A DNA stretch of 64,000 nt. Origin: Pavona decussata (lineage: Eukaryota). The notes under the pieces were generated by a model. That model ran no database searches, was not told the origin of the DNA, and saw nothing but the letters and a program-made list of their open reading frames with translations. Where the stretch lies: contig CDRNST010000144.1 of assembly GCA_977016875.1 (NCBI GenBank), positions 372,001 to 436,000 of the forward strand, written 5' to 3'. This document shows, piece by piece, positions 20,983 to 21,718 of the stretch (its first letter is position 1; the number at the start of each line of letters is the position of its first letter). The translations under genes and the position numbers were made by a program.

Positions 20983-21240
20983 ATCAGAATGTAAGTTGAA
21001 AAGTAAACAAAATATAAACTAGGGGCTGATGCTGTAAAATACAACAACTATGTTTTCTTCGTTCTTTAGTGTGAAAAACCAAATGATGCATTTCTTACAA
21101 AACAAAACATTACAATCGGCTGGAGTTAGGGAACATGTTTTCCTGACGACTAATGCAGAATACTATAGAGTAAAATTAGTATTTTATGGAAAAAGTAGAC
21201 TGTACAGTAGTACTGGTCAATAAGTTTAGTGACATTTGGT

Positions 21241-21256
21241 GGCTCCTAAAGGAGCC
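21241..21256 (-). promoter_or_regulatory. Histone-mRNA-like 3' stem-loop
   Basis: Minus strand ACAAC-GGCTCC-TTTA-GGAGCC-ACCAAAT: 6 bp stem, 4 nt U-rich loop, ACCA 3' flank, 32 nt after a stop codon. The top base pair is C-G instead of the canonical U-A. Confidence 0.65.
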
Positions 21257-21288
21257 GTTGTGAGAGATCATTTTGTAATGACTCTCTT

Positions 21289-21718
21289 TTACTTCGGTAA
21301 CCCACTCAGGTACAGAAATTTGTTGTAGTCTACATCATAGTAGAACCACAGATGGCTTTTCTGCTCGCCATTGTTGAGGACAAAATCGACTTGTCTTGCC
21401 CTCTTTTCTACTTTAACTGTTGATTCCGCCCAGTGCTACGCCAGCATTATCCATCTTCTGATAAGGCTTGGCTCACAACCGTTACTGATGAGAAAGAGAA
21501 CCACCTTGAAGGTTTAGGTATCACCCATGCATAGGTTTTTTCCAGAATATGAGCCGCATTTCCTTTGGCCCCGATTTTAATGGAGAGAATGCGTCCCAGT
21601 CAATTACTCTGGTCAACTGCCTTCTTTCCTCTACTACTGCTGCTCGTGACAGTAAACGAGTTTCTTTCATATCCTGAAGACACCTTACAGAAACCTCTGA
21701 ATTTCCATTCTTTTTCAT
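21289..21718 (-). pseudogene. Small intronless gene, copy 1 (uncharacterised; possibly primase large-subunit CTD/PriX-like)
   Basis: RLLSRAAVVEERRQLTRVIDWDAFSPLKSGPKEMRLIFWKKPM/GDT*TFKVVLFLISNGCEPSLIRRWIMLA*HWAESTVKVEKRARQVDFVLNNGEQKSHLWFYYDVDYNKFLYLSGLPK*. Clearly homologous to 55553-55822. The family label is inference. Confidence 0.75.

Follow-up and report, generated by a model that had tools for sequence, protein, structure and literature searches.

Two family gene copies and a histone-type stem-loop

The minus strand of the window, that is, the whole 64-kb stretch of DNA that was analysed, carries two copies of a small, intronless, non-histone gene from a family that encodes proteins of about 135 amino acids. 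Copy 1 occupies positions 21289..21718 (minus strand), from its start codon to a TAA stop codon. When compared to the family it contained one frameshift and one in-frame stop codon, with the homology spread over separate pieces. Copy 1 is a pseudogene and therefore cannot express an intact protein; the original prediction had spoken of a small gene, but in this copy the open reading frame is not intact. Copy 2 (55556..55822, minus strand) belongs to the same family and is truncated at its 3' end, covering profile positions 1-77 of 136, with the 3' 43% of the copy absent from the window. The lack of a hairpin behind copy 2 had been listed as a caveat to the stem-loop behind copy 1. Copy 2 does lack the hairpin, but since its 3' end is missing from the window this absence is uninformative and carries no weight as counter-evidence. 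Self-comparison of the window revealed no second DNA-level copy of the 3' region.

A histone-type stem-loop with a 6-bp stem and a 4-nt loop, GGCTCC/TTTA/GGAGCC, was located 3' of copy 1 at positions 21241..21256 (minus strand) by its sequence, the Rfam alignment and the predicted fold. Read 5' to 3' on the minus strand, the sequence is ACAAC GGCTCC TTTA GGAGCC ACCAAAT; the first stem arm occupies positions 21256-21251, the loop positions 21250-21247 and the second arm positions 21246-21241. The in-frame TAA is at 21291-21289, which gives a gap of 32 nt from the stop codon to the stem, and neither AATAAA nor ATTAAA is found between the stop codon of copy 1 and the stem-loop.

When the whole window was scanned against Rfam, Histone3 (RF00032) was the only family to pass in the 64 kb. 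The full match comprises the ACAAC flank, the stem-loop, ACCAAAT and sequence further downstream (21217..21261, minus strand) and its score of 34.7 bits is above the gathering threshold of 34 (E = 2.6e-6 when the whole window is searched). In addition, when the 91 nt around it were folded, the stem-loop appeared in the minimum-energy and the centroid structure alike (z = -5.0). The hairpin sequence, the 32-nt distance and the absence of AATAAA that had been described were all borne out by the sequence, the Rfam match and the fold, and the proposed histone-type identity was upheld by the RF00032 score (34.7 versus 34 bits). The hairpin in the window is confirmed as a real feature that did not arise by chance.

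The stem-loop forms part of a longer 3' box that is conserved in the family and consists of the stem-loop, ACCA, the position of a purine run and TGACCA; alignments and a covariance model placed this box at 21208..21264 (minus strand). Our own covariance model, which was built on 16 boxes, scored the window box at 61.2 bits. At the purine-run position the window reads TAAAC, where its relatives have AAAAG. This substitution explains the apparent lack of a purine run: the earlier statement that no purine-rich downstream element was visible is correct for the decayed window copy, but it does not extend to the relatives, in which AAAAG is conserved. Because the open reading frame is broken twice and the purine run is degraded, the signal in the window is a relic.

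A second hairpin was predicted by folding within the spacer between the stop codon and the stem-loop (21262..21286, minus strand). Spacer hairpins of this kind lie 7-12 nt 5' of the histone-type stem-loop; they show no homology between subfamilies, yet most subfamilies have one. The hairpin was found in the window and in loci L005, L008, L010, L016-L019 and L038, and was missing from L022, L053 and L056.

An unnamed protein family under purifying selection

Copy 2 supplied a clean 89-aa query, and the search with it identified the family as unnamed proteins of approximately 134-136 aa. A profile search yielded at least 267 database clusters at E ≤ 1e-3, none of which was named; the contigs that carry them are as long as 3.7 Mb. 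The same family was reached when the N-terminal piece of copy 1 was searched exhaustively, and the matches included predicted proteins that share the frameshifted reading of copy 1. When the frame that continues across the 3' untranslated region and the hairpin served as a protein query, no match was obtained.

The family gene is taken to be intronless because its genomic open reading frames are uninterrupted. No Pfam domain, histone or otherwise, was detected in the family protein; the PDB returned no match by sequence and none by fold, with no sign of a histone fold; and IMG/VR contained no relative of the family. The description of a non-histone, intronless gene agrees with these searches and with the uninterrupted genomic reading frames. 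The suggestion that the gene encodes a replication protein found no support, as there was no recognisable replication domain in the protein.

An AlphaFold2 model derived from 26 family sequences had a pLDDT of 86 and a pTM of 0.79, and predicted a six-helix bundle followed by a C-terminal beta hairpin. When this model was compared by Foldseek with the viral structures in BFVD, the best ten matches were all uncharacterised proteins of CRESS-DNA viruses (probability 1.0, TM 0.5-0.59, E values of 6e-4 to 5e-2, 17-23% identity). The predicted fold of the family thus appears to resemble that of these viral proteins. In contrast to the modelled fold, there was no match at the sequence level, and no Rep or capsid gene adjoins the family gene. 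The matched viral proteins themselves have no known function.

Among the intact copies that were close enough to measure, dN/dS was 0.09-0.16 at a dS of approximately 0.6, and the family protein is therefore under purifying selection. In more distant pairs the silent sites were saturated; the box was nonetheless kept. The host lineage of the family is most likely cnidarian or coral, and several of the sample series among the relatives' metagenome contigs are presumably coral holobiont metagenomes. The G+C content of the window and its BEL/Pao and KDZ repeats are in keeping with an invertebrate such as a cnidarian.

Recurrence of the box in related loci

Relatives of the window gene were collected by a protein-guided scan of metagenome contigs, which provided 80 loci with their flanks. 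At about 20 loci, a plain search for hairpins with a 6-bp stem, a 4-nt loop and a GG..CC base picked up this stem-loop immediately 3' of the gene and on its strand. With the covariance model, the box was detected in 31 of the 80 related loci in addition to copy 1 of the window, decayed versions included, and in all 31 loci it was on the same strand as the gene and 3' of it. Eight further database proteins from other assemblies (P0111, P0141, P0187, P0193, P0196 and P0201-P0203), some of them from the subfamily of copy 1 itself, translate the hairpin as GSFRSH or A[PL]LGAT. A comparable situation was seen at locus L016 (2950-3486), where the stop codon has been lost and the reading frame continues through the hairpin. 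The expectation that the box would be conserved in other copies was thus met by its presence 3' of the gene in 31 of 80 loci and in the eight read-through proteins. The GSFRSH and A[PL]LGAT peptides could serve as a signature with which to find more copies in protein databases.

Over the 35 related loci that were scanned against Rfam, Histone3 was again the sole family seen, with one match per locus. Loci L060, L053, L016 and L035 scored 36-38 bits and 13 others scored 27-34 bits, below the cut-off; that the majority of relatives fall narrowly short of it counts against a histone-type reading. The distance from the stop codon to the stem was 29 nt in L005, L010, L023 and L060. Some intact copies have a longer gap of 56-97 nt between stop codon and hairpin, and this too is evidence against a histone-type signal.

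An intact reading frame was found together with the box in L005-7, L010, L017, L018 and L022. In a distance tree, the box mapped to one large clade, where at least six subfamilies have it. It was missing from two clades, both of which include intact reading frames (L009, L024-26, L030, L032 and L039-41), and no obvious replacement signal was found in these clades. Because two clades with intact reading frames do without it, the signal is not essential to the family. In the L019 subfamily, several copies have lost the box through deletions.

Conservation pattern of the box

Members of different subfamilies could be aligned in just two places, the coding sequence (65-70% identity) and a separate 3' island (85-91%). 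The island starts a few nucleotides 5' of the stem and ends about 45 nt past the start of the stem, roughly 55 nt in all. Regional identities were calculated as mean pairwise values over twelve subfamily representatives. Identity was 30% in the spacer before the stem-loop, 68% in the 5-nt 5' flank and 91% in the 16 nt of the stem-loop; it was 73% at positions +1..+10, 61% at +11..+33 and 25% beyond +33.

The elements of the island follow one another in the order A-rich flank, GGCTC(C/T) TTTA GGAGCC, ACCA(A/C)AT, AAAAG(T) and (A)TGACCAAC. The ACCA 3' of the stem is near-invariant in the family, and the purine run AAAAG, approximately 12 nt 3' of the stem, is conserved in the relatives. Stem position 2 was a G-C pair in 22 of 22 sequences, and loop position 3 was invariably T. 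The top pair was C-G or U-G and showed no other variation; since it alternates only between these two states, the pairing of the stem has been kept. The atypical C-G top pair that had been pointed out is indeed present here, but for the family as a whole the departure from U-A has to be described as C-G or U-G. The search for compensatory changes in other copies, which had been proposed as a check, gave no support: no base pair showed a compensatory double change, as is expected for a nearly invariant element. The support for the structure therefore comes from sequence conservation and not from covariation.

Comparison with the histone mRNA 3' end

Stem-loop 3' ends are treated as the hallmark of replication-dependent histone mRNAs, and genome pipelines call histone genes by them. 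The targets of SLBP are regarded as confined to histone mRNAs. In the histone signal, the downstream element is rich in purines and complementary to the 5' end of the U7 snRNA. The diagnostic histone stem-loop has a 6-bp stem, a 4-nt loop, a G-C pair in position 2 of the stem and a U at loop position 3; histone stem-loops have a median position of 30 nt after the stop codon, with stop-to-signal distances of 25-60 nt (bioRxiv 10.64898/2026.10.14.759114).

The family box resembles the histone signal, that is, the RF00032 stem-loop and downstream element that are served by SLBP and the U7 snRNP, in most of its parts. It has the 6-bp stem and the 4-nt loop, a GG/CC stem base in which pair 2 is G-C, and a U both at position 1 and at position 3 of the loop. 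It is preceded by an A-rich 5' flank (ACAAC in the window) and followed by ACCA (ACCAAAT in the window). The stem-loop in the window stands approximately 30 nt after the stop codon of an intronless gene, the purine run of the family lies some 12 nt after the stem, and the genes are multicopy, as histone genes are. The family differs from the known system in that its gene does not encode a histone, in a top pair that is C-G or U-G and not the usual U-A, in an extra conserved TGACCAAC 3' of the purine run, in the second hairpin that is often present in the spacer, and in the absence of the signal from part of the family.

Alternative explanations

The hairpin might be a chance match, or the relic of the 3' end of a neighbouring histone gene. 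Its score in the window is just 0.7 bits over the cut-off and the copy that it follows is a pseudogene in a repeat mosaic, both of which would suit such an origin; however, an E value of 2.6e-6 for the window argues against chance, and 31 independent loci and eight further proteins share the box in its place behind the gene, with a single Histone3 match per locus and no histone ORF nearby. Chance and a stray histone 3' end were both rejected because of this recurrence in relatives, and we give this explanation almost no credence. A second explanation accepts the conserved box but gives it a role that has nothing to do with histone-type processing: it could be bound by a different protein that recognises RNA or DNA, could govern stability or localisation from a place 5' of an ordinary poly(A) site, or could be a signal at the DNA level, in which case the likeness to the histone stem-loop would be convergent or vestigial. 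Such a role would fit the narrow failure of most copies to reach the Rfam cut-off, the atypical top pair, the second and unrelated hairpin that is often found 5' of the box and that histone mRNAs do not need, and the existence of intact family clades without the box. It is at odds with the retention of all known SLBP determinants (the A-rich flank, G-C at position 2, U at loop position 3 and ACCA), and with the placing of the best-preserved copies at a histone-typical 29-32 nt from the stop codon. Moreover, conservation reaches approximately 30 nt beyond the expected cleavage site, with a purine run at the place of the downstream element, and no AATAAA is found downstream at a conserved position. 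On balance we consider a different function to be rather unlikely.

It could also be argued that the family unit is an element that moves or stems from a virus, and that the hairpin serves this element's own machinery, as a terminal hairpin like the Helitron 3' end or as a replication origin like that of CRESS-DNA viruses, and is not an mRNA signal. The family is multicopy, with units of approximately 2.3-2.8 kb that are 80-90% identical within a subfamily; copy 1 lies between inverted occurrences of a short motif, fragments of KDZ transposons lie near copy 1, and the predicted fold matches only uncharacterised CRESS-DNA virus proteins. In a Helitron, a terminal CTRR marks the element boundary at the 3' end and is preceded by a hairpin at a distance of 10-12 nt, and autonomous copies carry a Rep/helicase gene. 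The family hairpin is similar to that of a Helitron in being a short, G+C-rich hairpin near the end of a repeated unit, followed in the window by CTAA 11 nt on. However, this CTAA is not conserved and occurs after the stem in the window copy only, homology does not stop at the hairpin but reaches +45 when subfamilies are compared with one another and +800 inside a subfamily, so that no terminus is present at this point, and the family hairpin, unlike that of a Helitron, matches the histone model with its flanks included. A Helitron 3' end was rejected, given that there is no conserved CTRR, that homology extends beyond the hairpin and that no Rep/helicase ORF was found. The origin of a CRESS-DNA virus consists of a nonanucleotide in a loop of 9-13 nt beside a Rep gene; this candidate was likewise rejected, since the family loop has 4 nt and no nonanucleotide and the flanks contain no Rep gene. 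More generally, the flanks yielded neither a Rep, helicase or transposase gene nor terminal inverted repeats, IMG/VR contains no member of the family, and the hairpin is always in the orientation of the gene and just 3' of its stop codon. No terminal inverted or direct repeats were found that delimit the unit; a second conserved ORF was likewise not found, and different subfamilies have nothing but the coding sequence and the box in common. The gene had been described as element-borne, a description that finds no support when neither a transposase nor terminal repeats nor any other shared gene accompany it. We judge it quite improbable that the hairpin belongs to the machinery of such an element.

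Repeat sequences around the family gene

The 19-nt motif CGTACGGTTTGTACAGATC occurs in the 64 kb only at 20347-20365, 20464-20482 and 20930-20948 on the plus strand and at 24062-24080 on the minus strand, which places it on both sides of copy 1 in inverted orientation. Three related loci (L003 at 4626, L014 at 2835 and L045 at 5421) carry it as well, at 1-1.4 kb 3' of the family gene, and it may belong to a repeat that is shared or to a larger unit. An ORF at 19545-20066 (minus strand), 1.2 kb 3' of copy 1, encodes a CxC5 cysteine cluster of the type associated with KDZ transposases (PF18718, E = 9e-10). The motif and the KDZ fragment are suggestive of a repeat mosaic and do not demonstrate that the gene is carried as cargo. 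In locus L045, approximately 900 bp (3148-4050) interrupt the family gene when compared to its subfamily; this is probably a nested insertion.

A probable histone-type processing signal on a non-histone family

What the sequences show is a match to the histone model, the place of this match in relation to the stop codon, the conservation of the match and purifying selection on the protein; processing by SLBP and U7 and coupling to S phase are what we infer. On this sequence evidence the box is probably a histone-type signal, made up of stem-loop and downstream element, that would give rise to non-polyadenylated, SLBP-bound and replication-coupled mRNAs of a non-histone family. The unusual top pair, the absence of compensatory double changes, the intact clades without the box and the pseudogene state of the window copy weigh against this reading. 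The working signal would consist of the A-rich flank, the stem-loop, ACCA, AAAAG and TGACCAAC. In the transcript, SLBP would bind to the stem-loop and the U7 snRNP would pair with the downstream box, and cleavage would be expected to take place a few nucleotides 3' of the stem. The resultant mRNA would be without a poly(A) tail, and its abundance would track DNA replication in the manner of histone mRNAs.

The literature searched, in which older papers were thinly covered, contained no account of a histone stem-loop on a non-histone gene. A more far-reaching proposal, which we put forward tentatively and regard as possible but by no means the expected outcome, is that this large, lineage-restricted family has adopted the complete histone 3'-end signal and would represent the first non-histone set of SLBP, U7 and S-phase targets, perhaps as a domesticated viral gene that is timed to host replication. 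A conserved stem-loop and downstream box on a large non-histone family under purifying selection would mean that the SLBP/U7 pathway can be recruited by other genes, and the family would provide a natural test of what the signal does by itself, both in cell-cycle coupling and in the missing poly(A) tail. Genes of the family would also be missed or under-counted in poly(A)-selected transcriptomes. In any event, the analysis has flagged for study an unnamed protein family with a predicted fold that appears virus-like.

Other features of the window

The window contains several further features. A run of 161 N occupies positions 52628-52788. A short ORF on the plus strand at 20446-20670, which ends ...KNSFSYSGATLWNSLP... 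and has no Pfam match, resembles what we take to be the C-terminal tail of a retroelement protein. On the same strand, a 378-aa ORF at 38051-39187 has an acidic N-terminus and no Pfam match; it calls to mind, in our estimation, the N-terminal portion of tyrosine-recombinase retroelements or of Cryptons. The genes of an LTR retroelement of the BEL/Pao type are found at 58540-62100 (plus strand), with DUF1759 (gag-like), the Pao peptidase A17, an integrase zinc domain and DUF5641.
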